This document shows, one piece after another, positions 1,332 through 25,763 of a stretch of DNA of 64,000 nt. The position numbers and the translations under genes were made by a program. The notes under the pieces are model-generated. The model made no database searches and had not been told where the DNA came from. It worked only from the letters and a program-made list of their open reading frames with translations. Each line of letters opens with the position of its first letter. The first letter of the stretch is position 1. Origin of the DNA: Corallochytrium limacisporum Hawaii (lineage: Eukaryota; Protista; Pluriformea); NCBI GenBank assembly GCA_002811645.1, contig PDIP01000036.1, forward strand, positions 1-64,000. Reading direction: 5' to 3'.

Positions 1332-3449
1332 TCATTCCTCACTACCTAACCTCTTGACTTCTTCATCAATGGCAGAAAATTGCCAACGGAACGACGCGGG
1401 ATAGAGGAAGGGACGCAGGTCGAATCGATTGTCATCAGGGGAGTAGGATTCAGCATGATAGGCTGGGGTCACCGTAGTCATCTTATGGCGATTAATCGCG
1501 TACATTCGGTACCAGAACTTGATCTTATCTGCCACTTCAGCGGCAGAATACATCACTCCATTTATGCCTTCACTAGCGACATGGCGGAACATGCTCAGCG
1601 GCCCGCAAAGAGAAATCTTACGAAGACGTCCAAAGATGCTCAATTCGTCGTAAGTCATACCCATATCAACTTCATCGGTTTGAACGTAGTCCTCAGTGAT
1701 AGGTTCCAACTCCGCAGTAGGAGGCGCATCTAAGAACTCGCTCAGCATGTCACACTTGACGTGATCACGGTAGTGCGCAATGAAAGCCTTCAAATCTGTC
1801 TTGCTTATTCCACCTATTGGATTGACATCAGCGGACGAACAGTCATACTTCGTCATGTATCCCCGTAGACACTCATCAACATTGGCGCTACCCAAAACCA
1901 AGAGACCGCCGCGGCGATCCATGCTCCACGGCAAAAGTTGAGCACAAAGATATGCCATGACCATGCGCAAACGAGCCTGAATGTTTTGCAGCGCCACATT
2001 CTCTACATGGGATCCACCATGTACACGGAACTGTGGAACTTTGCCACTAAGCGCCGTAAAGATAGACGCTACAGCCTGCACCGCAGTGTCTATGTTAAAA
2101 TCGTAGTGATTTGAACCAATGAACTCCGCCAGGCGCTTGCTACGCGAGCGTGTCTCTGGTCCCGAGTTCGAAGTGCCCATGAACGCGGTGTAGAAGATCA
2201 AACGGCAAACATGCTGTGGCGTTTTAATGTCATCTGGATCTGCACCAGTCAAGTACTGAAAATCCTTGCGCACCTGCACATCACCTTTGTTAACAATACT
2301 GTCGTACACAAGTTCCGTCATGGACCCCACAATGCAAGCCGTTGCACAGCTATCAATGCCACCGCTGAGAGGAAGAAAGAACCCTCCCATACCACTGCGA
2401 CGCAGGTAGTCCCAAAGCCAACAGGCCGGACCCAAACGGATCTCATCTTGTGGGGTGTGATAGAAAATATCTCGAGGAGGCGTTGGCTTGGCATAGGTCT
2501 CCTGGCATAGGCGCATTTCGCAGTCGATGCGACAAAAGGCACGTGCCGTGCTTGCCTGAATGTTGCGGCTGGCACTTTTACCTCGGTAGGAGTGTACCTC
2601 ACTGAGATCAACAGTAGCAGTAATGACTTCGATATCCTGTAGACTAAACTGAGATGTTTGCGCCAGATTTCGGCCGTTCATATAAATCATTCCGCAGCCA
2701 TCGTAGTATACGCGTTCACCATCACATCCCTGCTGATTTGCAAACAGATACACACCTCCACTCATGCGTGTAGCTCCCTCAACCAATTCCACTCGCCTAT
2801 GCAGTTTACGCAGCTCGTGATGACTTCCGCTACCATTGACAAAGATGTCGACACCATCGAGTGCCATGGAAATGTGCGGCGCCTCCGGGACAAAGACTTC
2901 TTCGCAGCTCTCAATGCCGATGCAATACCCATCAGCACTACGAATAACACCTTCACCAAAGGGGCAAGTTGTTTGCTTCTTCGCTGTGCGCTCTGACACG
3001 AAATCAGGCAAAATGTAATCTGAGATTTCCATGCGTCTCCGGTACGGAGTAAACCAGCGCATTTCTCGATAGTTTCCATCGTTGGCGAGGAACAATTTCG
3101 GTCGGATCAACAGAATCTCTTTGTTATAGAAGAAGACACGGCAATTGTAGCGGACACCTTTGCGCATTACCGGCATTCCAATGTCAATAATAATGTCTGT
3201 ACAGTCGGGATGCTCCAGGAGCCTAGCAAAAGACTCCCATGCGTGACGGTATGTGTCCTGTTCGTAAAAATGATCATTACAACCATACCCAGTCACTTCC
3301 AGTTCAGGTCCTGTTCGTAGGCGTGCACCTTTGGCCTTTGCTTCCTGAATGCTCTTCAGGATCCGCTCAAAGTTGCCTTCAAAATCCAGGGCCCACTGAT
3401 TCAGAATGCAAGTGGCAACCACTGTGGTGGATGCGTGCCTACTGTACAT
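1332..3449 (-). CDS. NADSYN1: Glutamine-dependent NAD+ synthetase
   Basis: 705 aa; nitrilase domain (LNQWALDFEGN, GPELEVTGYGC, RPKLFLANDGNYRE) and synthetase domain (FFLPLSGGIDS, QNIQARLRM, GYMTKYDCSSADVNPIGG). Confidence 0.98.
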   Translation of the reverse strand: MYSRHASTTVVATCILNQWALDFEGNFERILKSIQEAKAKGARLRTGPELEVTGYGCNDHFYEQDTYRHAWESFARLLEHPDCTDIIIDIGMPVMRKGVRYNCRVFFYNKEILLIRPKLFLANDGNYREMRWFTPYRRRMEISDYILPDFVSERTAKKQTTCPFGEGVIRSADGYCIGIESCEEVFVPEAPHISMALDGVDIFVNGSGSHHELRKLHRRVELVEGATRMSGGVYLFANQQGCDGERVYYDGCGMIYMNGRNLAQTSQFSLQDIEVITATVDLSEVHSYRGKSASRNIQASTARAFCRIDCEMRLCQETYAKPTPPRDIFYHTPQDEIRLGPACWLWDYLRRSGMGGFFLPLSGGIDSCATACIVGSMTELVYDSIVNKGDVQVRKDFQYLTGADPDDIKTPQHVCRLIFYTAFMGTSNSGPETRSRSKRLAEFIGSNHYDFNIDTAVQAVASIFTALSGKVPQFRVHGGSHVENVALQNIQARLRMVMAYLCAQLLPWSMDRRGGLLVLGSANVDECLRGYMTKYDCSSADVNPIGGISKTDLKAFIAHYRDHVKCDMLSEFLDAPPTAELEPITEDYVQTDEVDMGMTYDELSIFGRLRKISLCGPLSMFRHVASEGINGVMYSAAEVADKIKFWYRMYAINRHKMTTVTPAYHAESYSPDDNRFDLRPFLYPASFRWQFSAIDEEVKRLGSEE

Positions 3450-4036
3450 TGTTCACCAAAATCTACCGAACACAATGTCCTTCAAATAACTGTATGTAGA
3501 TGGCTCCACAAGACCGTGGCGCAATATATGGGCCTGTGGTGTGTGTTTTGTACCTCATTTGCCTGGACACAGAAGGCCAGGTGAACCAACACGCACCCCG
3601 TCATTTGTGACGTTTTTGGTGACGGGCCCTGGGAAGCTTGTTCGAGTGTATATGGTTATGAGCACCGGATCCCTAAATCCACTATCGAAATAGCGAGAGC
3701 CTCATTAAGTTGCTCCAACTAAGCTTGGTGGGTAGGTGTTCAGTTATTGGCGGAGTCCCTTTTATCTCCGAATTTCCTTTCTTCGCTTTTTGGCGCGCGC
3801 GGTCGGGTTACAAGGGGCTGGTGCTGCCCGGAAGTTCGCGGTACTCGCACTACCCGTGGCCGTCCAGAAGGGGTTTCCTGAGCGGGTCTCATGCGGCCGG
3901 GGTAGACCACTGGCACCTGCTGTGTGAGCTTGGAAACAGTTATTTCAATGGATTATATCAGTTATTCCGTACGCATTAGGAAATTCAATGCCTACGATAG
4001 TGTGCTAAGGGCAAATTATATCATTTGTACACAGAA

Positions 4037-5107
4037 ATGTACATTGGTAAGAAACAAGACAAAGCACATCTTCAAAGCCTTGTGGATAAATATATCACGG
4101 AACTTGGAATCTTTCGACTGAAGCGTGACCATAGGGTGGCACAAAGGCTTAGGGAGTATAGAAATAAACTACAAAAGCTAAAGAAACAGAAATTGAAGCA
4201 CTATTCATTGGAGGCACCGGTGCAAACTGAGGAGGACATCGACCAGGTCACACCACAAAGTGAGTTTGTCCTTGCCCGCGTATCGGATAAATCGTTTGTA
4301 AGATTGGTTTGCGTCCACTGTGGTAAGGAAACGTTTGCCAACACCCTTGGATTCTTCAATCATTGCCGTTACTCTCATAACGTACACTACGCGACATTGG
4401 GAGAGGCAGCGTGGGTTTGCGGCAAGTCAGTACCCGAAGCATCTATTCCGCAAGAACACCCAGTTCGATCCCACATAGGTATTATACCGCGTTTGGGAGC
4501 TTCTTCTGAACACTATACGGAAACAAGCTTGCAGAAACAATTGGAGTCCTTGGTACCTGCCCATCTATTGAAGCATACCCTCACGGGCTTACCAGAGACA
4601 CACAGCACGGAGAGTCGTGTTCTCGAAGGAGGTGAATTCAAGTCGCGTTTCTACGAAAGGCGTTTAGTGATCGTTGGAAATACCAGTCAGTACATTTCTC
4701 CATCCCTGAGACACGGAGACGCATCATATACGCATCGCTGGCTTCTGTACGTCCGGCAACCAGAGAAAGTTGGAGAGGACAGCAGTGACGTGTCTGCCCT
4801 CAGGTATACAAAGCTCAAGAACGTACCGTCTTTAGACATCAACCGGGTACTCTCACGCGTGGTGTTCCATTTGCACCCGAGTTTTGCCCCCAATCAAGTA
4901 ATTGAGGTCTTGGAGCCTCCGTTTCAGATTGAGCGTAGGGGCTGGGGAGAATTTCCTGTTCGCATTTCTATCCATTTCAAGGAATCACGGTTCCAAAAAC
5001 CGTTGCATATCATTCATCACTTACGTTTGGACAGATCCTTTAGTGGCCTCCAGACCTTAGGTGAAGAAACAGTCGTTGCGGCGGAGATCGATCGCAGAAC
5101 GTTGTAA
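4037..5107 (+). CDS. YEATS2: YEATS2 homologue, N-terminal part (coiled coil, AHC1-like C2H2 finger, YEATS domain)
   Basis: First ATG at 4037 (track starts at TTG 4025); CVHCGKETFANTLGFFNHCRYSH finger; YEATS motifs THRWLLYV, FHLHPSF, PPFQIERRGWGEFPVRI; YEATS2-type end HHLRLDRSFSGLQTLGEETVV. Confidence 0.9.
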   Translation: MYIGKKQDKAHLQSLVDKYITELGIFRLKRDHRVAQRLREYRNKLQKLKKQKLKHYSLEAPVQTEEDIDQVTPQSEFVLARVSDKSFVRLVCVHCGKETFANTLGFFNHCRYSHNVHYATLGEAAWVCGKSVPEASIPQEHPVRSHIGIIPRLGASSEHYTETSLQKQLESLVPAHLLKHTLTGLPETHSTESRVLEGGEFKSRFYERRLVIVGNTSQYISPSLRHGDASYTHRWLLYVRQPEKVGEDSSDVSALRYTKLKNVPSLDINRVLSRVVFHLHPSFAPNQVIEVLEPPFQIERRGWGEFPVRISIHFKESRFQKPLHIIHHLRLDRSFSGLQTLGEETVVAAEIDRRTL

Positions 5108-5120
5108 ACGAATTTGCAAA

Positions 5121-6857
5121 ATGGCTTGCTCAGCCCTCCTGATGCCCGTACCGGTAACCTTGCCTGGCGCAGAACACACTACGGAAGAGACCGTCCCAAT
5201 AACAATTCTTTCTGGTGGTAAGCACGGCAAAACTGGGGATACCCGGTCTTCGGCAGACAAACCAGGAGGCGATGGTAAGGGTAACGAAGGCAACAAGAAG
5301 GACGCATCCAACACCGGCAGCGGCGGAAGAAACCGCAGTGGCAAAGATGGCGGTCAGCAAGGTAGTGCTAGCGGCGGTGGTGGCGGAAAGGGCGACAAGG
5401 ATGGTTCAAAGAAGAAGCGTATTGACACCATGACCACGGAAGAAGATGACGAGGATGACGAGGATGACCTTGATGATGATGATATTGACATCGACTCTGG
5501 GGAAGATGAGGACGATGATGAAGAGGATGATGACATCGACATTGATTCCGTGGACGAGGATATCGACGTTGACATCGAAAGTGAAGACATTGAGGTCGAC
5601 TCTGAAGACATCATGGACGAAAGTGGTGACGAAGTCGAAGCAGAGGAACAGCAAATTGCACAGCAGATGGTTACAGACGCAGCGGAGCGTGCCATTGCCG
5701 AACAGCGCAAGAAAATCGCGAAGATGCTGCCGGAAAAGGACCGCGAGATCCCAAAGGCACCCACGCATAAGGAACCTGGCACCTGGACACCTCTCAGCAC
5801 CTCTACACGCCCGGATGTAGCCAAGGTGACCGCTGCCGATGTTGCGGCAACACGTCTCACCAAGCACAAGAAGCGCAGCACCGCGGGAGGTCTTGAGTTT
5901 GCGCCGACACTAAAGGCCGTCGCTGCCCAGTACCCCTTCGTACGAACCGAGCACGGACCACAGACAGAGAATATGTACCATCCGTACATTCAGGCAGATG
6001 ACATTACGGAGATGTTGCTGTGGCCCATGGACATTCGTGGTGCTGTTGAGTGGCAACGTGCACGTAACATTCAGGCATACCTACAGCAACACCACCCGGA
6101 ACTCAACGACAGTATTCCCACAGTGGAAGAGCTGGTCTTCCAATGTCGTGAACAGGGTCTCACACCTGTGGTAGTCTTCAATGGCGCCCTGGGTCGCAAT
6201 GGTGTCAGGGTTGTGGCGGAGCACCAGATTTGCAAAGTATGTGGTGCTGAAATCCGCCACGATGGCAAGGATATGCCCCAGGATGCTTTTGCGGAGCATG
6301 TTTGCAACAAAAATCGTCGCGCCCAGGGGCCCATGACGCTGAGTTCCAGCACACCAGTCGACCACATTTTGGCAGTCCTTAACATTGACCCGAATGCTCT
6401 GGTCAAAGAGCGCAGCAAGGAGCTCAAAGATATGCAGCAGAAGCAGCACGCGTACCAGCGACTGCTAAAGACGCGGGAGGCTCAGCGCAAGGGAAATGGA
6501 GCGGTGGCAGGTTTACCGCCCCCAAGTCACGACGAAAACATCCGCACATGGCTCACCCGCGCCGCAGACGAGGTGGACGCCAGCTTCGGCCTCAGTGCCC
6601 TCTCCTCACTGCACACTTCGAGCCACGACTTGCATGAGGCGGGAGAGGCCTATGTACTTGAAAGCATGCTTGTGGTGATGTGTCGCCGTTTCATTGAACA
6701 ATTGGCACGCGAATCGTTGGATGTCGCGCGCACAAGTGCAGATCAGTCCGCTGGTGACCACGCCGTCGCCGTTACCCCTTACCACGTGTATCAGGCAGTG
6801 CTAAAGACGCCAGAATTTGACTTTGCAACCGATGCGTACCTTGGCAAGCCGATGTAA
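5121..6857 (+). CDS. YEATS2: YEATS2 homologue, C-terminal part (Gly-rich and acidic linker, EWQRA motif, C-terminal histone-fold-like region); frame is open from 5061
   Basis: +1 frame relative to the upstream ORF; first ATG at 5121 (gcaaaATGG); WPMDIRGAVEWQRA resembles the YEATS2 W..KRRAAEWQRA motif; C-terminal RRFIEQLARES...VTPYHVYQA. True start uncertain. Confidence 0.75.
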   Translation: MACSALLMPVPVTLPGAEHTTEETVPITILSGGKHGKTGDTRSSADKPGGDGKGNEGNKKDASNTGSGGRNRSGKDGGQQGSASGGGGGKGDKDGSKKKRIDTMTTEEDDEDDEDDLDDDDIDIDSGEDEDDDEEDDDIDIDSVDEDIDVDIESEDIEVDSEDIMDESGDEVEAEEQQIAQQMVTDAAERAIAEQRKKIAKMLPEKDREIPKAPTHKEPGTWTPLSTSTRPDVAKVTAADVAATRLTKHKKRSTAGGLEFAPTLKAVAAQYPFVRTEHGPQTENMYHPYIQADDITEMLLWPMDIRGAVEWQRARNIQAYLQQHHPELNDSIPTVEELVFQCREQGLTPVVVFNGALGRNGVRVVAEHQICKVCGAEIRHDGKDMPQDAFAEHVCNKNRRAQGPMTLSSSTPVDHILAVLNIDPNALVKERSKELKDMQQKQHAYQRLLKTREAQRKGNGAVAGLPPPSHDENIRTWLTRAADEVDASFGLSALSSLHTSSHDLHEAGEAYVLESMLVVMCRRFIEQLARESLDVARTSADQSAGDHAVAVTPYHVYQAVLKTPEFDFATDAYLGKPM

Positions 6858-6934
6858 TGGCTCGGGATAATCTGAAAACTATAAGAAAGGCATTCATACA
6901 TGACACCGAAATTTTGTAATATGTTGTGCATCAT

Positions 6935-8446
6935 CTAGCTCAGGGTCTGTGCTCGAAGCATCTCACCCAGAGCCTTCAAATTACCCATGTGCCTCTGATA
7001 TATACGCAGGGCGCTCCTTGACTCTGCCATGGCGAGCACGCGGCGCCGTTTGTTGACATCTTCACTGCAGCGATTCATGACCATGTCGTGTATCTTGGTA
7101 ATCTTGCCCATATTTGTGATCCCGTCCCGGTTTCCTCCATTGCACTTTGCCAGTTTGTCTACAAAATGCATACGCACATGCGGTTCCATTTCTACCCAGA
7201 GTTTCGATTGCATTTGCGCTTTAAGAAGCGTAAGAAGGTCATCCGCGTGTTGTGTGAGCATTTCTGAATCCAGAAACGCATCACCGGTCGGTCCCCGGAA
7301 GAGGGCAATGCGCACGCTGACCACGATCGGCGCTGGCAGCATATTCTGACCTGTGGTTAATGAAATTGCTTCCATGTTACAGGCGCGTTGAGGACAAAGC
7401 TCTGCAGCATATGTTTCATCCAACAGTCTCCGCTTCTGCACGGCCAGGGGATCGTTATCGCTGATCTCTGCGTACAGAGACATTTCCACAATGGATTCAA
7501 GCGGATTTCCCGGGAAAATGAAACCATACATATACAGCAAGGTTGCATTGCTCTTGACGCCGTAGTCCAGGAAGAGCTGCGCTCCTGGCTCAATTTCCGA
7601 TATCGCAACGATAGAAACCATTTCTTCCTCAGGTATATAGCAGTGCGTTACGTTGAAGTGTTGTTCTGGTGGGATATCTCCGACTGCGATGCGCGTGTTA
7701 ATCATGTCCACACCTGGAACAAGGGCTACGGTGGCTAGCTCCTGATTCGCTGTGAAAAACTGCATACCTCTGCTCATGACCATACTCTTACACCACGACC
7801 AATCTTCCCAAAGCAGAAACTCAAGAAGCCCGATGTCAATTTCCAGTGCGATCGTTCTGATGAGTTGTGAATGGAGTTCCTTGTCCTCAAGCACTGCACT
7901 TGTGAGACCCTCCGAGAGGTGCTCTTGCTGGCCTTCAGTCCAAACAATCGGACAGTCAACTTGAGACCGTGTCGGCAGTGCAAAGAGGTAGCCATGGATG
8001 TGCAATGGATCATCCGGCTTGAAATCAACGAGGCGGCCACCTTCCTTGGCCTCCTCCATTTGCCAGCCGTACAAGTGATACAACAGCAGCAGGTTCAGTG
8101 TCAGACAGTGCTGGGCGTGATTGGGATGTTCCTTGAAAATCGATAGTTGATATAATTTTTGCCAGTTTTCAAAATGCTGCCATCTCTTTACTGCCTCAAA
8201 TACCTCTGGTTGACTCAATAGTCCGGCATTGGACGTTCTCGGCACATCGTAGGTTATGCACCATTTCAGAGGGACGTCGATGATCCGTGAGCCGTTGGCA
8301 ATCGTGTCAACAGTACTTAAGATCACGCCACGGTTGCCATGGTCTAGACCCGTTTTCACTTCTACTTTTGGCTTTTGTTCTCCATCTTCGCTGACTAGGC
8401 CAGTGATTCCTTCCTTTCCGAGAAAGGTGCGCAGGCCTTCATCCAT
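6935..8446 (-). CDS. SET-domain methyltransferase, SETD3/SETD4/Rubisco-LSMT type
   Basis: 503 aa; GNRGV, IIDVPLKWCIT, ALVPGVDMIN, IEPGAQLFLDYGVKSNATLLYMYGF, DNDPLAVQKRRLL. Confidence 0.85.
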   Translation of the reverse strand: MDEGLRTFLGKEGITGLVSEDGEQKPKVEVKTGLDHGNRGVILSTVDTIANGSRIIDVPLKWCITYDVPRTSNAGLLSQPEVFEAVKRWQHFENWQKLYQLSIFKEHPNHAQHCLTLNLLLLYHLYGWQMEEAKEGGRLVDFKPDDPLHIHGYLFALPTRSQVDCPIVWTEGQQEHLSEGLTSAVLEDKELHSQLIRTIALEIDIGLLEFLLWEDWSWCKSMVMSRGMQFFTANQELATVALVPGVDMINTRIAVGDIPPEQHFNVTHCYIPEEEMVSIVAISEIEPGAQLFLDYGVKSNATLLYMYGFIFPGNPLESIVEMSLYAEISDNDPLAVQKRRLLDETYAAELCPQRACNMEAISLTTGQNMLPAPIVVSVRIALFRGPTGDAFLDSEMLTQHADDLLTLLKAQMQSKLWVEMEPHVRMHFVDKLAKCNGGNRDGITNMGKITKIHDMVMNRCSEDVNKRRRVLAMAESRSALRIYQRHMGNLKALGEMLRAQTLS

Positions 8447-9038
8447 CTTTGGATCTGCGGTGGTATCTTACCACACTCAGACGTTGTTGGGATCACCTTC
8501 TCTTTCACAAGTCAAATCAACTTAACACGATTCTCTAAGCATATTGTTTCAATCGGTTTCCTCTACTCGAAGTCTCTCACCCGTTTCCGCGCCTTGCGTT
8601 GTTCCAAAAGGACCTTCATTGTCCTGTGGTTGGGACTGTCGCGTGGTTTGGAATTAGGAGGAGGGTGAGGGGATGATCGCAGTATCGACCAAGAACGCGT
8701 CGCTAGGCTGAGCATTCTTCTCCAGCTCGCTCCGCTCCGGGGAGGGTGGCTGGCTGGGGCGGGTGTGGTTTCTGGCGCAGTGGGATGAGGAAAAATAAAG
8801 GAATTGCAAGGGTGGGTTAGGGTGTCAAAGGGTATTGCAGAGGAAGTATCTTTTGTAATTAAAGCACCAATAGAGGTTACTACTTTTCAAAATTCTCAGG
8901 ATCATAATACATATTTTGTAGCAAGGGTACCAGAGGAAATCGTCCTCGAAAAAAAAAGAGGAAACTCCAAGGAAACTAAGGTTTACATTAGTCATACATT
9001 AATGTCGAATTAAAGAAACAACAAGCAACACCGCAATC

Positions 9039-17068: not shown

Positions 17069-17540
17069 TTTTTCTATCCAGGCTTGTGGGTTATTGAATG
17101 TTATCCCTGTTCTGTGTTACTTCTCTCCTACCCTTCCATGTCTTCCTTTCACCGTCGGTGGCTTTTGAGTTCTTGATCTACATGTTCTTTACGCGAATTC
17201 ATAAATCAGCGCTTTTTCGAGGCAACTTGAAGAATACTGGCACGCTAAATACCAATGCAATCTGCCTGCCAATTTCACAGTCAGCACTCGACAAAGAGCC
17301 GGGAGGGTAAAGCCCACAGACGTCCCCCAAAGGAGGCGATCCAAGTGCCGACGGCCCGACTGTCTCAAGCGTTTCCCCGCCGCAGTCTCCCCGCCCTCCC
17401 TCTCTTCACCGTTTCCGAAGAGACTCGCGTTCGCTCCTTGGCCGGCAACGAGAGAGACTGGACCGCCAAACGGGCACACTCGGCCACACACTCTCTCTCC
17501 CTCCCCGGCCCTCCAGCCCTTTTTCACTTTGACGCGTTTG

Positions 17541-17737
17541 GGTGGCCTCTACCCAACCAATATTTTTTTTACACCCCCCCCCCCCCCCCCCCCCCCCNNN
17601 NNNNNNNNNNNNNNNNNNNNNNNNNNNNNNNNNNNNNNNNNNNNNNNNNNNNNNNNNNNNNNNNNNNNNNNNNNNNNNNNNNNNNNNNNNNNNNNNNNNN
17701 NNNNNGGTGGCCTCTACCCAACCAATATTTTTTTTAC
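17541..17737. other. Assembly gap (N 17598-17705) flanked by the same ~30-nt sequence and poly-C
   Basis: ggtggcctctacccaaccaatattttttt occurs at 17541 and 17706, on either side of the Ns; typical of overlapping contig ends. Confidence 0.85.
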
Positions 17738-18073
17738 CCCCCCCCCCCCCCTCTCCTGCCCCTGCTGTACCCCCCCTGGGTCGCGCCAAAAAATGCGCGC
17801 ACAAAACAATTAGACCCCCCCCCACCAAGGGCCGCCACACTCACTTTAACTGACACCCTTGTTACATGGTTTTAATCCAAACGCCCCCAGAGGAAGGTAG
17901 AGAAAGAGAGAGAGGGAGAGAAGCACAGCACCCTTGGGAAGCAGAGGGGGGGGGGGAGAGATGGGGGAATAGAGAGAGAGAGACAGCCAGACAGACAGAC
18001 AGACAGAAGACCACGTAGAAAACCCAAAAAAAAAGCCAAACTCGTCTTCTCCCCCCCCCTTCCCCGCCCCCTT

Positions 18074-18980
18074 NNNNNNNNNNNNNNNNNNNNNNNNNNN
18101 NNNNNNNNNNNNNNNNNNNNNNNNNNNNNNNNNNNNNNNNNNNNNNNNNNNNNNNNNNNNNNNNNNNNNNNNNNNNNNNNNNNNNNNNNNNNNNNNNNNN
18201 NNNNNNNNNNNNNNNNNNNNNNNNNNNNNNNNNNNNNNNNNNNNNNNNNNNNNNNNNNNNNNNNNNNNNNNNNNNNNNNNNNNNNNNNNNNNNNNNNNNN
18301 NNNNNNNNNNNNNNNNNNNNNNNNNNNNNNNNNNNNNNNNNNNNNNNNNNNNNNNNNNNNNNNNNNNNNNNNNNNNNNNNNNNNNNNNNNNNNNNNNNNN
18401 NNNNNNNNNNNNNNNNNNNNNNNNNNNNNNNNNNNNNNNNNNNNNNNNNNNNNNNNNNNNNNNNNNNNNNNNNNNNNNNNNNNNNNNNNNNNNNNNNNNN
18501 NNNNNNNNNNNNNNNNNNNNNNNNNNNNNNNNNNNNNNNNNNNNNNNNNNNNNNNNNNNNNNNNNNNNNNNNNNNNNNNNNNNNNNNNNNNNNNNNNNNN
18601 NNNNNNNNNNNNNNNNNNNNNNNNNNNNNNNNNNNNNNNNNNNNNNNNNNNNNNNNNNNNNNNNNNNNNNNNNNNNNNNNNNNNNNNNNNNNNNNNNNNN
18701 NNNNNNNNNNNNNNNNNNNNNNNNNNNNNNNNNNNNNNNNNNNNNNNNNNNNNNNNNNNNNNNNNNNNNNNNNNNNNNNNNNNNNNNNNNNNNNNNNNNN
18801 NNNNNNNNNNNNNNNNNNNNNNNNNNNNNNNNNNNNNNNNNNNNNNNNNNNNNNNNNNNNNNNNNNNNNNNNNNNNNNNNNNNNNNNNNNNNNNNNNNNN
18901 NNNNNNNNNNNNNNNNNNNNNNNNNNNNNNNNNNNNNNNNNNNNNNNNNNNNNNNNNNNNNNNNNNNNNNNNNNNNNNNN
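18074..18980. other. Assembly gap (907 N)
   Basis: Run of N in the CEP120-UGP divergent intergenic region. Confidence 1.
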
Positions 18981-19585
18981 GCAACACCCCATCCCCTCTC
19001 TTGACTCCGCTCCCCTTTTTGCTTGTGTCCTCGAAGACTGGAGCACCAATGAGCAAGCCGATCGCTGGCCCCGTCACGAAGCTGGCTTTTTTTTTTCTTT
19101 TTGGGAGCCCGGTGGGCAGTCAGTCGAGTGCGTGTCCGTGTTCTTGATGAGCGATGAATGAGAGAGGGTTCATCACGTCCCGATCCGAAGGGGGATCCAT
19201 TCTGTGCGCCTGGGACTAATACGTACGCTGGGGTACAATAGCCCGTTCGTTATGCAAGTGTGTTTATTTTTATTTTTTGGAATGGTTCAGTTCCGCCCTG
19301 AAGGCTGGAATAACCCGCCCCGGGGCAATACGACGGAGACTGCTTTGGACCCTGTGTTGCTCTGTTGTTGGCCTTGATGGGGAAGGGACCCACGACCGGG
19401 GCAGACAACCAAGTTGACTAGATTGGCAGGTCAGATGTTCTCTGGAGCAGTGGACAGGTACTTTTGACCATACGGATGTGAAGAGCGGAACCTCTATCTT
19501 GGCCAGATTGAGCGTCCGTTCAGAGGCACGTCGCGTTTCGGGTAATATCGTCAATAGCTCGATAGAACCAACCCACTCAATCACC

Positions 19586-23581: not shown

Positions 23582-24700
23582 CTATGCGTGGAAATTCTCG
23601 TAGAGGATTTGATATGTTAGTTCAAGCTCCTCTTCTGTGTAGTCCTCAGTACTGAGAACCTTGCGGCCTGCAATTGACAGAAGGGAAGGAACATCGAGGT
23701 AGATTCGATGTGTTTTGTTAGTGCGCAAGCGCCCTCCAGCATCGAGACAGCCACCAAAGACATACAGGCAGCCGTTCACAGTGGCTACGGTCGCGTGGAA
23801 GTTACGCGGCCCAGGAGAGTGACGACCAGCAGAGTCACAGAGAGCCCACCGCATGGTGTCCAGGTTCAATCGCCAAAGATCCTGGAATGTGGTCTTGCCA
23901 TCGGTGCCTCCAAACATGAAAATTTTATCCCCGTAGATATCCACAGAGTGGCACCGACGCGGAGCAGGGTATCCGTGAACTGAGTCCGCTTGACATGACC
24001 ATTCGCTCCATTCCTCGGCTTCGTAGTTGAATGCGTAGACATCCAAAAACGCGCTACGGTCACAGTAGGGGTCTGGTCTACCACCACCGACCACAATAAA
24101 TTTGTCCTTCATGTGCACGACACGATGACAGTATCTGCCCTTTGGTGCCCATGGCACAATAAGCTGTGTCCACTCTCGAGTGTCCAAATCGAACTTGCAG
24201 ACCTCATCAAAAAATTTGTGCCCTGACGTTCCACCATAGACATATAGACTGTTCCTGCGGAGACTAAAGGTTAAGCTCTGCCCGTAGCGTGGTGCCGGCA
24301 GCACCCTTCCGTTTCCTTTGGAGAGCAGGGTCCATTCCAGTGTGTCCACATCCAGGACATAGAGTTTGCTGCTATTGCTCAGTCCGAAGCGGTGCCCACT
24401 GCCTCCAAACAGATACATTTTGTTCTCAACAAGCACCGCAGAGTGCGAAGTAAGCTCCCCGGGCAGGTCACCGGTTGTCTCTAATCTTTCCCATTCCCAG
24501 TAGAGCAAGTCTAGTCGCCACAGATCAGAGTAGCAGACACCATTGTCGTACCCACCGTAGATGTACAGATAGTGTCCATTGCTCACTGCCGAGTGCCCTG
24601 AACGCTCTGTGACAGGAGGATTTGTTTGTTGGCACTCAATCCAACCACCAAAGCGGGAAATATCAGTCCGCCAGCTCGGTGCTCCCCAACGTCTATCCAT
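23582..24700 (-). CDS. KLHDC10: Kelch domain-containing protein 10 (CRL2 substrate receptor)
   Basis: First ATG 24700; six kelch repeats (RSGH...YIYGGY, LFGGSG, YGQS...VYGGTSG, GYPAPRRCHS, NFHA...GCLYVFGG); C-terminal BC-box VPSLLSIA. Confidence 0.88.
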   Translation of the reverse strand: MDRRWGAPSWRTDISRFGGWIECQQTNPPVTERSGHSAVSNGHYLYIYGGYDNGVCYSDLWRLDLLYWEWERLETTGDLPGELTSHSAVLVENKMYLFGGSGHRFGLSNSSKLYVLDVDTLEWTLLSKGNGRVLPAPRYGQSLTFSLRRNSLYVYGGTSGHKFFDEVCKFDLDTREWTQLIVPWAPKGRYCHRVVHMKDKFIVVGGGRPDPYCDRSAFLDVYAFNYEAEEWSEWSCQADSVHGYPAPRRCHSVDIYGDKIFMFGGTDGKTTFQDLWRLNLDTMRWALCDSAGRHSPGPRNFHATVATVNGCLYVFGGCLDAGGRLRTNKTHRIYLDVPSLLSIAGRKVLSTEDYTEEELELTYQILYENFHA

Positions 24701-25763
24701 TCTGTGTTCTGTTACGTACAAATACGTGACGTGGCACCCCAAACTAAATTGTTTGTTCTATTCTTTGCTTGAACACCGTCACACAAGGTATTTCTCGTAT
24801 AGTCCGCTGGTCTTTCACGGGGCCCCTTGGCAGCCAATCAGGTGTTCATATTGAATATCCTTGTCTCCAGCTACCCCTGCAAACACCTACTCTCTTGCTC
24901 AACTGGACAGCAGTGGGAAATTAACTCGCTTCCGCGGATCGTTCCCCCGAAATACCTCTGCCCACGGCCGTACTTGAAACCCACTGAACAATTGGGGTTA
25001 CGCGCGCGCGTCCAGACGAGTCATTTGAAACCCTAAACAAATAAACAGAATACTACCACAACGGGCCACCAAGAGGACAGATTTGTCGTCCACCGCACTT
25101 GTCCCATCGCCGTCGAAACACAGAAAGACAGAGGGGGGCCATGCCCTCCCCCTTTCCTTAGCATAGGGGGTCCCGGAGGGGGGGGGGTGTGGGGGAGGCA
25201 GGCAGTGGTGTGGGTGTGCAAGGAAGGGGGGGGGGGGAGGAGGGGAAGTAACGCGTCCCTCTCTGTCTGACTGTGCAGGCCCCCCCCCCGCTTGCCTTTC
25301 TTTTATCCTTATTTTCTTTTTACAAAAGACTTCCCCCTCCTCCCTTCCTTTCCTCCCTCACCTCTCTTCGCGAGACCTTCCTTTTTCTGTCTCGCCATTT
25401 CCTTCCTTTTTGTATTTTGAGGACCGCTGCGGGCAGGCTGTCCACTCTGAGCAGTCATCTGCGGGTAAGCGTGGTTATGGAAGCTCCTATTCCCTCTCAC
25501 TCTCTGTCTTCAAACCGCCGTTCTTTCTTTTCATTTTAATGGTCCGCCACTCCAAAATGTCATACTTTCTTACGCGCGGAATATTAAGTAAAAGAGGGTT
25601 AGGGTAGAGGGAGAAATTGGACACAGAGAAAAAAGAAAAGGTATCTGCTGTATTTCCCCCTTTTCTTTTCTTTTTTTTTTCAATAGTCTCCTTTCTTTTT
25701 CTTTTTTTTTCTTATGCTTTCTGGCCGCGCCCCCTTTGAAAGCTTCTTTTTTTTTCTTCTTAT

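Follow-up and report, generated by a model that had tools for sequence, protein, structure and literature searches.

How can both halves of one gene be expressed when a stop codon and a change of reading frame lie between them? A eukaryotic messenger RNA (mRNA) is expected to code for a single protein, and when a eukaryotic gene breaks in two, the downstream piece usually requires a promoter of its own. The question is raised by the YEATS2 locus of Corallochytrium limacisporum Hawaii, which lies within positions 1-64,000 of the forward strand of contig PDIP01000036.1 (assembly GCA_002811645.1); this stretch of 64,000 nucleotides (nt) is called the window hereafter. YEATS2 is the scaffolding subunit of the ATAC acetyltransferase complex and carries a YEATS domain together with a histone fold (PMC5651844). 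At the present locus the reader and the histone-fold-like module are not in one polypeptide, as a stop codon and a frame change separate open reading frame 1 (ORF1) from ORF2 in two strains. Based on the complete loss of internal ATG codons from the first half, we propose that an ancestral single YEATS2 gene has undergone fission and that its two halves are probably translated from a single bicistronic mRNA through leaky scanning rather than through reinitiation or frameshifting.

The split of YEATS2 in DNA and RNA

The elements of the locus on which the argument depends are as follows.

4002-4036, forward strand: short, ATG-free 5' leader; contigs of the RNA-like assemblies X3 and X4 (see below) start at 4002 and 4010, respectively.
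4037-5107, forward strand: ORF1, 356 residues, 1,071 nt, from the ATG at 4037 to the TAA at 5105-5107; N-terminal half of YEATS2.
4040-5120, forward strand: ATG-free tract of 1,081 nt, comprising ORF1 after its start codon and the spacer, in all three frames.
4742-4744, forward strand: codon of Leu236, at the position of a Met in the homologues (WM-VYVR motif; alignment of 18 homologues).
5061-5133, forward strand: 73-nt GT...AG intron proposed in the preliminary description of the locus, unsupported here.
5105-5120, forward strand: stop codon of ORF1 and the 13-nt spacer between the ORFs.
5121-6857, forward strand: ORF2, 578 residues, in the +1 frame relative to ORF1; C-terminal half of YEATS2.

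The +1 frame is closed upstream by a TAG at 5058-5060 and is open from 5061, resulting in a 47-nt overlap with ORF1. By our own arithmetic, twenty stop-free codons are expected with P ~0.4, and the overlap is no more than chance. The first ATG of this frame is at 5121, 13 nt past the TAA of ORF1, in the context caaaATGg. The coordinates of both ORFs, the overlap, this ATG and its context were all correct in the preliminary description when the sequence was rechecked. It had also placed other same-strand neighbours about 400 nt or more apart, but the spacings in the window are actually 208-1,256 nt. ORF2 is present in the searched protein collection as a separate 578-residue protein (source eukprot).

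Four public runs, representing three samples and as many studies, gave contigs that were compared with the window over 3000-8600. Two of the assemblies are of DNA and are identical to the window over this range; the present sequence may itself derive from them. The other two, X3 and X4, come from other samples and studies and are RNA-like, as genes are covered and the intergenic stretches 3488-4001 and 6853-6927 are not. In X4, a single contig spans 4010-6852; it differs by 15 substitutions, contains neither gap nor joint and represents a distinct strain; in X3, a contig over 4898-6797 crosses the junction without any difference. All four assemblies agree base for base across 5040-5175. The same stop codon and frame change are found in a distinct strain and no indel is seen in four assemblies; therefore the 1-nt assembly indel considered in the preliminary description is excluded, and the probability that a single-base assembly or sequencing error makes the split is virtually nil.

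The RNA-like contigs are colinear across both ORFs and unspliced; the dominant RNA of the locus is therefore the unspliced one. The 73-nt intron has GT...AG ends and would restore the frame, and contigs drop rare variants. However, no joint at 5061-5133 is seen in the X3 or X4 contigs, and splicing would delete the last YEATS strand (ETVV...DR), which aligns to human YEATS2 and to 18/18 aligned homologues. Some homologues hold an ETVV...DR-type strand and the following IP-type motif in tandem. Of the GTA...AG segments, just one (5104-5133) would take out the stop codon; it was rejected as a micro-intron, as it is 30 nt long and leaves the frame unchanged. That the 73-nt intron or another small one restores the frame in a minor mRNA form is hardly credible.

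The first cistron is free of internal ATG codons

The strongest feature of the locus was overlooked in the preliminary description. No ATG occurs in any frame between 4040 and 5120, and the limits of this tract coincide exactly with the two start codons (1,084 nt from start codon to start codon). The tract is a statistical outlier. Dinucleotide-preserving shuffles (2,000 trials) gave 13.7 ± 2.9 ATGs with a minimum of 4, compared with 0 observed. When the protein was fixed and the synonymous codons were permuted, 5.2 out-of-frame ATGs were expected, and none was found in 0.02% of the permutations; with codons drawn from the usage of the window, out-of-frame ATGs were absent in 0.26% of cases. 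No other N-free interval without an ATG, on either strand of the window, is as long as that of 4037-5121; the next is 580 nt, and the mean gap is about 60 nt. Among 66 ORFs of at least 250 residues in 264 kb (the window and a further 200 kb of the genome), ORF1 alone has fewer than 6.5 ATGs per kb, the others having 6.6-31. The second strain likewise has 0 ATGs in the tract, and its single-nucleotide polymorphisms (SNPs) create none. In contrast to the ATG-free ORF1, ORF2 contains 45 ATGs.

The loss is also seen in the protein, which has no Met beyond the initiator, compared with 2-11 in the matching part of 18 YEATS2 homologues; neighbouring genes have 1.3-4.0% Met. The Met of the WM-VYVR motif is found in 18/18 aligned homologues and is replaced by Leu236 in ORF1.

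Other ATG-poor stretches were also found. The second-longest real ATG-free run of the window is made of adjoining gaps of 410 and 580 nt at 24151-25141 (forward strand). Two other ATG-poor ORFs of the window (17255-18992) were discarded as artefacts of N runs; such runs, of 108 and 907 bases, lie at 17500-19000 and give false long ATG-poor ORFs on both strands beside a CEP120-like gene. On another contig of the same genome, a 171-residue ORF (L018:7972-8487, forward strand) has no internal ATG, and the next ATG follows 38 nt past its stop codon; this ORF may be a further AUG-free upstream cistron.

Start contexts and proposed leaky scanning

Positions -3 and +4 are occupied by G and T, respectively, around the start codon of ORF1 and by A and G around that of ORF2. 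With a matrix from 18 window genes, a small sample in which 14 have A at -3, the context score is 0.4 for ORF1 versus 2.55 for ORF2. The RNA-like contigs start 27-35 nt before the ATG of ORF1, which makes the leader at least 27-35 nt long, and it is probably short. The closest ATGs 5' of the leader are at 3988 and 3948. A 6-codon ORF with the ATG at 3988 (3988-4008), 14 nt 5' of the first RNA-like contig base, would be an upstream ORF (uORF) if the true transcript start is further upstream.

Leaky scanning is favoured over a stop and restart because ORF1 is AUG-free, its start context is the weaker one and the leader is short. It is further favoured because reinitiation, +1 frameshifting or an internal promoter would not select against AUGs across all of ORF1. 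The preliminary description had suggested gene fission and a bicistronic mRNA with reinitiation; we retain the fission and the bicistronic mRNA, and replace reinitiation by leaky scanning.

We propose the following course of events. A single YEATS2 gene would have been split just past the YEATS domain, with both halves remaining in one transcription unit and sharing a bicistronic mRNA. The majority of scanning ribosomes would initiate at AUG 4037 and make a free 356-residue reader protein. A fraction would miss this AUG, scan about 1.1 kb without meeting another one and initiate at 5121, making the 578-residue half with the three-helical bundle domain (3HBD) and the histone-fold-like tail. Selection for leaky scanning would then have purged every AUG of ORF1 in three frames, including the one for the Met of the WM-VYVR motif. 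We thus infer a single mRNA for both ORFs, initiation of ORF2 by leaky scanning and a function for both proteins. The chances are about even that a conserved multi-domain chromatin gene split by a frameshift was rescued in this manner; its 356-codon upstream cistron would have lost its internal AUGs, and with them a conserved Met, and become a 'transparent' ORF, with the first start context governing the ratio of the two products.

The fused form of YEATS2 in other organisms

Homologues were collected by an exhaustive HMMER search with ORF2 residues 240-578. A word-index protein search with the whole of ORF2 had returned ORF2 alone, as words of the acidic linker swamped the search, and HMMER was used instead. 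Besides ORF2, 25 proteins matched with 26-38% identity. YEATS and 3HBD are present in one polypeptide in 19 of them, among which are proteins of the animals Trichoplax, Actinia and Tachypleus and of the fungi Spizellomyces, Blakeslea and Absidia. Because 19/25 homologues, from animals as well as fungi, hold both domains in one protein, the fused form of YEATS2 is, judged by this distribution, the ancestral one.

Six matches have no YEATS domain, and for three of these it can be demonstrated that they are fragments. Two of the six begin without a Met and are apparently partial ORFs, and one further match has a 1,516-residue cluster mate. P0008 has none of the scanned sequence motifs and is probably unrelated, and P0025 (Endostelium) is a transcriptome ORF. 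P0022 was rejected as an independent 3HBD-only protein, since a YEATS part lies just upstream on the same contig in two other frames (L005:1-1884, a Logan contig of SRR14578328); as this contig reads, P0022 is a gene-caller fragment of an intron-bearing fused YEATS2 gene. In that gene, Arg stands where the W-M-V-Y motif usually has a conserved Met.

The reader half and the scaffold half

Both halves are homologous to fused YEATS2. The following domains and motifs were assigned within them.

4310-4378, forward strand: C2H2-type zinc finger, ORF1 residues 92-114 (alignment with Blakeslea, Spizellomyces and Absidia).
4643-5095, forward strand: complete YEATS domain, ORF1 residues 203-353, with a loop insertion of about 20 residues and the pocket residues kept (phmmer against human YEATS2).
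5238-5690, forward strand: low-complexity linker, Gly/Lys-rich and then acidic, in place of the variable linker of the fused homologues (translation).
5904-6170, forward strand: 3HBD with the EWQRA motif (Pfam PF22951).
6231-6305, forward strand: conserved Cys cluster, C-x2-C ... C, near-invariant C132, C135 and C156 of alignment A2.
6582-6830, forward strand: histone-fold-like tail made of a long helix, a loop, a short helix and an FDF motif.

In ORF1, the Pfam YEATS family (PF03366) covers residues 231-332 with an E value of 3e-23. The best matches of known structure are chains of human YEATS2 (7eie, 5iql and 6lsd; E about 1e-37, phmmer against PDB). The alignment to human YEATS2 includes the last YEATS strand and reaches residue 353/356, ORF1 ending three codons after the last aligned residue, which bears out the earlier claim that the split lies at the end of the YEATS domain. 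Compared with the residues of the acyl-lysine pocket of YEATS2 listed by Zhao et al. (PMC4856769), H, S and WGEF are retained in ORF1, and both Tyr residues are changed to Phe. The terminal ...DRRTL of ORF1 still matches in the alignment of 18 homologues. The homologues continue with an IP-type motif a few residues further on, and a similar M-P-V-P, although a weak match, is found in the first residues of ORF2; this resemblance suggests that the break cost the protein little or no sequence.

At the other end of ORF1, the N-terminal helix is common to all homologues. The zinc finger and the next ~30 residues are shared with the fungal homologues and absent in the aligned animal proteins, suggesting that the finger is an ancestral opisthokont feature lost by animals. 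The loop insertion inside the YEATS domain (4763-4828, about residues 243-264) is found in 0/18 aligned homologues. We argue that ORF1 is probably still a working gene, because its 356-codon frame is intact, its conservation is deep and the purging of ~14 ATGs takes a long time.

ORF2 can be aligned with the C-terminal part of fused YEATS2 proteins over successive blocks, namely the EWQRA helix bundle, the Cys cluster and the tail ending in an invariant FDF; the C-terminal YEATS2 parts are indeed in the +1 frame, as first described. The 3HBD lies in ORF2 residues 262-350 (E 8.6e-12) and is the sole copy in the genome. Invariant tail columns of alignment A2 are F285, D328 and F329. In the AlphaFold model of the C-terminal half, the predicted local distance difference test (pLDDT) score is 82-96 over most of the 3HBD, with one 10-residue block at 68. 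The modelled tail forms helices at 266-300 and 314-331 with pLDDT of 63-88. Foldseek comparison of the model against PDB gave histone folds of the H2A/NF-YC type as top matches, all with E > 1 and none significant, and a PDB sequence search with ORF2 gave low-complexity matches only. The SNPs between the two strains in ORF2 are mostly synonymous in its own frame (6 synonymous, 2 non-synonymous), which suggests that ORF2 is translated and constrained by purifying selection in that frame.

Comparison with known systems

In human MOCS2, a bicistronic mRNA carries two overlapping ORFs for the two subunits of molybdopterin synthase, the second being reached by leaky scanning. Similar to the proposed YEATS2 mRNA, partners of one machine are encoded in different frames of one mRNA, with ribosomes skipping the first start codon. 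However, the upstream ORF of MOCS2 has <100 codons, and its products match separate bacterial genes, not pieces of a fissioned eukaryotic gene.

The green-algal bicistronic loci of Chlamydomonas and Auxenochlorella show a weak ORF1 context, under-representation of AUG before ORF2, a short spacer and a short leader, and mutational tests linked this set of features to leaky scanning (PMC11291117). The present locus resembles them in having two ORFs, probably on one transcription unit, ATG depletion before ORF2, a weaker ORF1 context and a short leader. The spacer is very short in both, 13 nt here and medians of 40-183 nt in the algae (PMC11291117). In contrast, the ATG depletion is total here (0 of about 14 expected), whereas the algal median of observed over expected is 0.43-0.49 (PMC11291117). 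The algal pairs are two separate genes for which leaky scanning is proven, and here the ORFs are the halves of one ancestral gene in a holozoan protist, for which leaky scanning is proposed.

Compared with animal and fungal YEATS2 (PMC5651844, PMC4856769), the two ORFs together hold the same parts in the same order, that is, the N-terminal helix, the YEATS reader with its pocket, the 3HBD, the Cys cluster and the histone-fold-like tail. The differences are that these parts form one polypeptide there and two proteins in different frames here, with the reader not covalently tethered, that ORF1 has no internal Met, and that the linker is a long Gly/Lys and acidic tract. A literature search found no paper pairing bicistronic mRNAs with Corallochytrium, and the matches to polycistronic and Corallochytrium were unrelated by title.

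Alternative explanations

ORF2 might be translated from its own mRNA, transcribed from a promoter inside ORF1, with separate overlapping transcripts merged in the long contig. A contig over two genes is no proof of one transcript, and the X3 contigs break at 4898-4905, where the depth steps from 41.8 to 57.5. However, the X4 contig is unbroken over 4010-6852, and a transcript starting near 4900 needs only ~220 nt free of AUG, whereas 4040-4897 also has 0 ATGs versus about 11 expected from composition. We regard this explanation as unlikely. Programmed +1 ribosomal frameshifting within 5061-5107 would yield full-length YEATS2, and ribosomes that terminate instead would release the short reader. 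In known systems such as antizyme and Euplotes, +1 shifts can be favoured by a stop codon in the A site. Similar to the +1 frameshift genes (antizyme, Ty1/Ty3, Euplotes), the upstream ORF ends in a stop codon and overlaps shortly with a +1 continuation, which is open for 47 nt before the stop codon. Unlike in those genes, no known shifty motif is found in the ORF1 frame at 5061-5107, and no stimulatory RNA structure was detected, since the RNA of 5085-5230 folds with z = +1.07 and 170/200 shuffles fold as well; a Ty1-like CTT-AGG at 5056-5061 was rejected as it is out of the ORF1 frame. Moreover, 20 codons without a stop are no more than chance would give, and frameshifting would select neither an AUG-free ORF1 nor a strong AUG 13 nt past the stop codon. 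The frameshift near the ORF1 stop codon suggested in the preliminary description is thus distinctly unlikely.

Termination of ORF1 followed by reinitiation at the AUG 13 nt downstream agrees with the short distance from stop to start within the same RNA-like contig. Once 356 codons have been translated, reinitiation is as a rule very inefficient unless a dedicated element assists it, and on reading the 75 nt before the stop codon no UGGGA-type motif was seen. It also offers no reason for the purge of AUGs from a translated ORF1, and we consider it very unlikely. The remaining possibility is decay, in which ORF1 would be a relic whose only present role is that of an AUG-poor leader or uORF of ORF2, and the organism would in effect have lost the YEATS2 reader. 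The loop insertion within the YEATS domain and the SNPs in ORF1 (4 non-synonymous, 2 synonymous, too few to judge) are consistent with decay. Against it, ORF1 keeps 356 open codons, a match to human YEATS2 with E about 1e-37, the pocket residues, the N-terminal helix and the fungal-type zinc finger, and the purging of ~14 ATGs is slow, so that an unconstrained ORF would meanwhile gain stop codons or frameshifts. A relic is highly improbable.

Several observations weigh against leaky scanning from one mRNA. The ORF1 context has a purine at -3 and is only moderately weak by a matrix of 18 genes. The RNA-like contigs cannot prove that one RNA molecule bears both ORFs, and the break with its depth step in X3 may reflect transcription starting inside ORF1 or simply a break in the assembly, X4 being unbroken there. 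Recent constraint on ORF1 is not demonstrated by its SNPs. The ORF1 here, 1,071 nt, is about three times as long as the algal ORF1s (medians 291-357 nt; PMC11291117). Finally, no close relative to date the split was found in the protein collections by HMMER or in the metagenomes of the Joint Genome Institute (JGI) by a scan with ORF1.

Implications

The locus suggests another route for gene fission, in which one mRNA is kept and the upstream piece is cleared of AUGs, so that some ribosomes reach the second start codon. If true, leaky scanning can serve a full-size upstream gene of >1 kb in a lineage next to animals, and gene fission could be tolerated in eukaryotes by this route. One mRNA would then supply both the reader and the scaffold, their proportion depending on the context of the first start codon. 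The upstream cistron encodes a well-studied histone acyl-lysine reader. As this reader is not covalently tied to the half with the histone-fold-like tail, Corallochytrium would offer a natural experiment on the importance of tethering in ATAC-type complexes.

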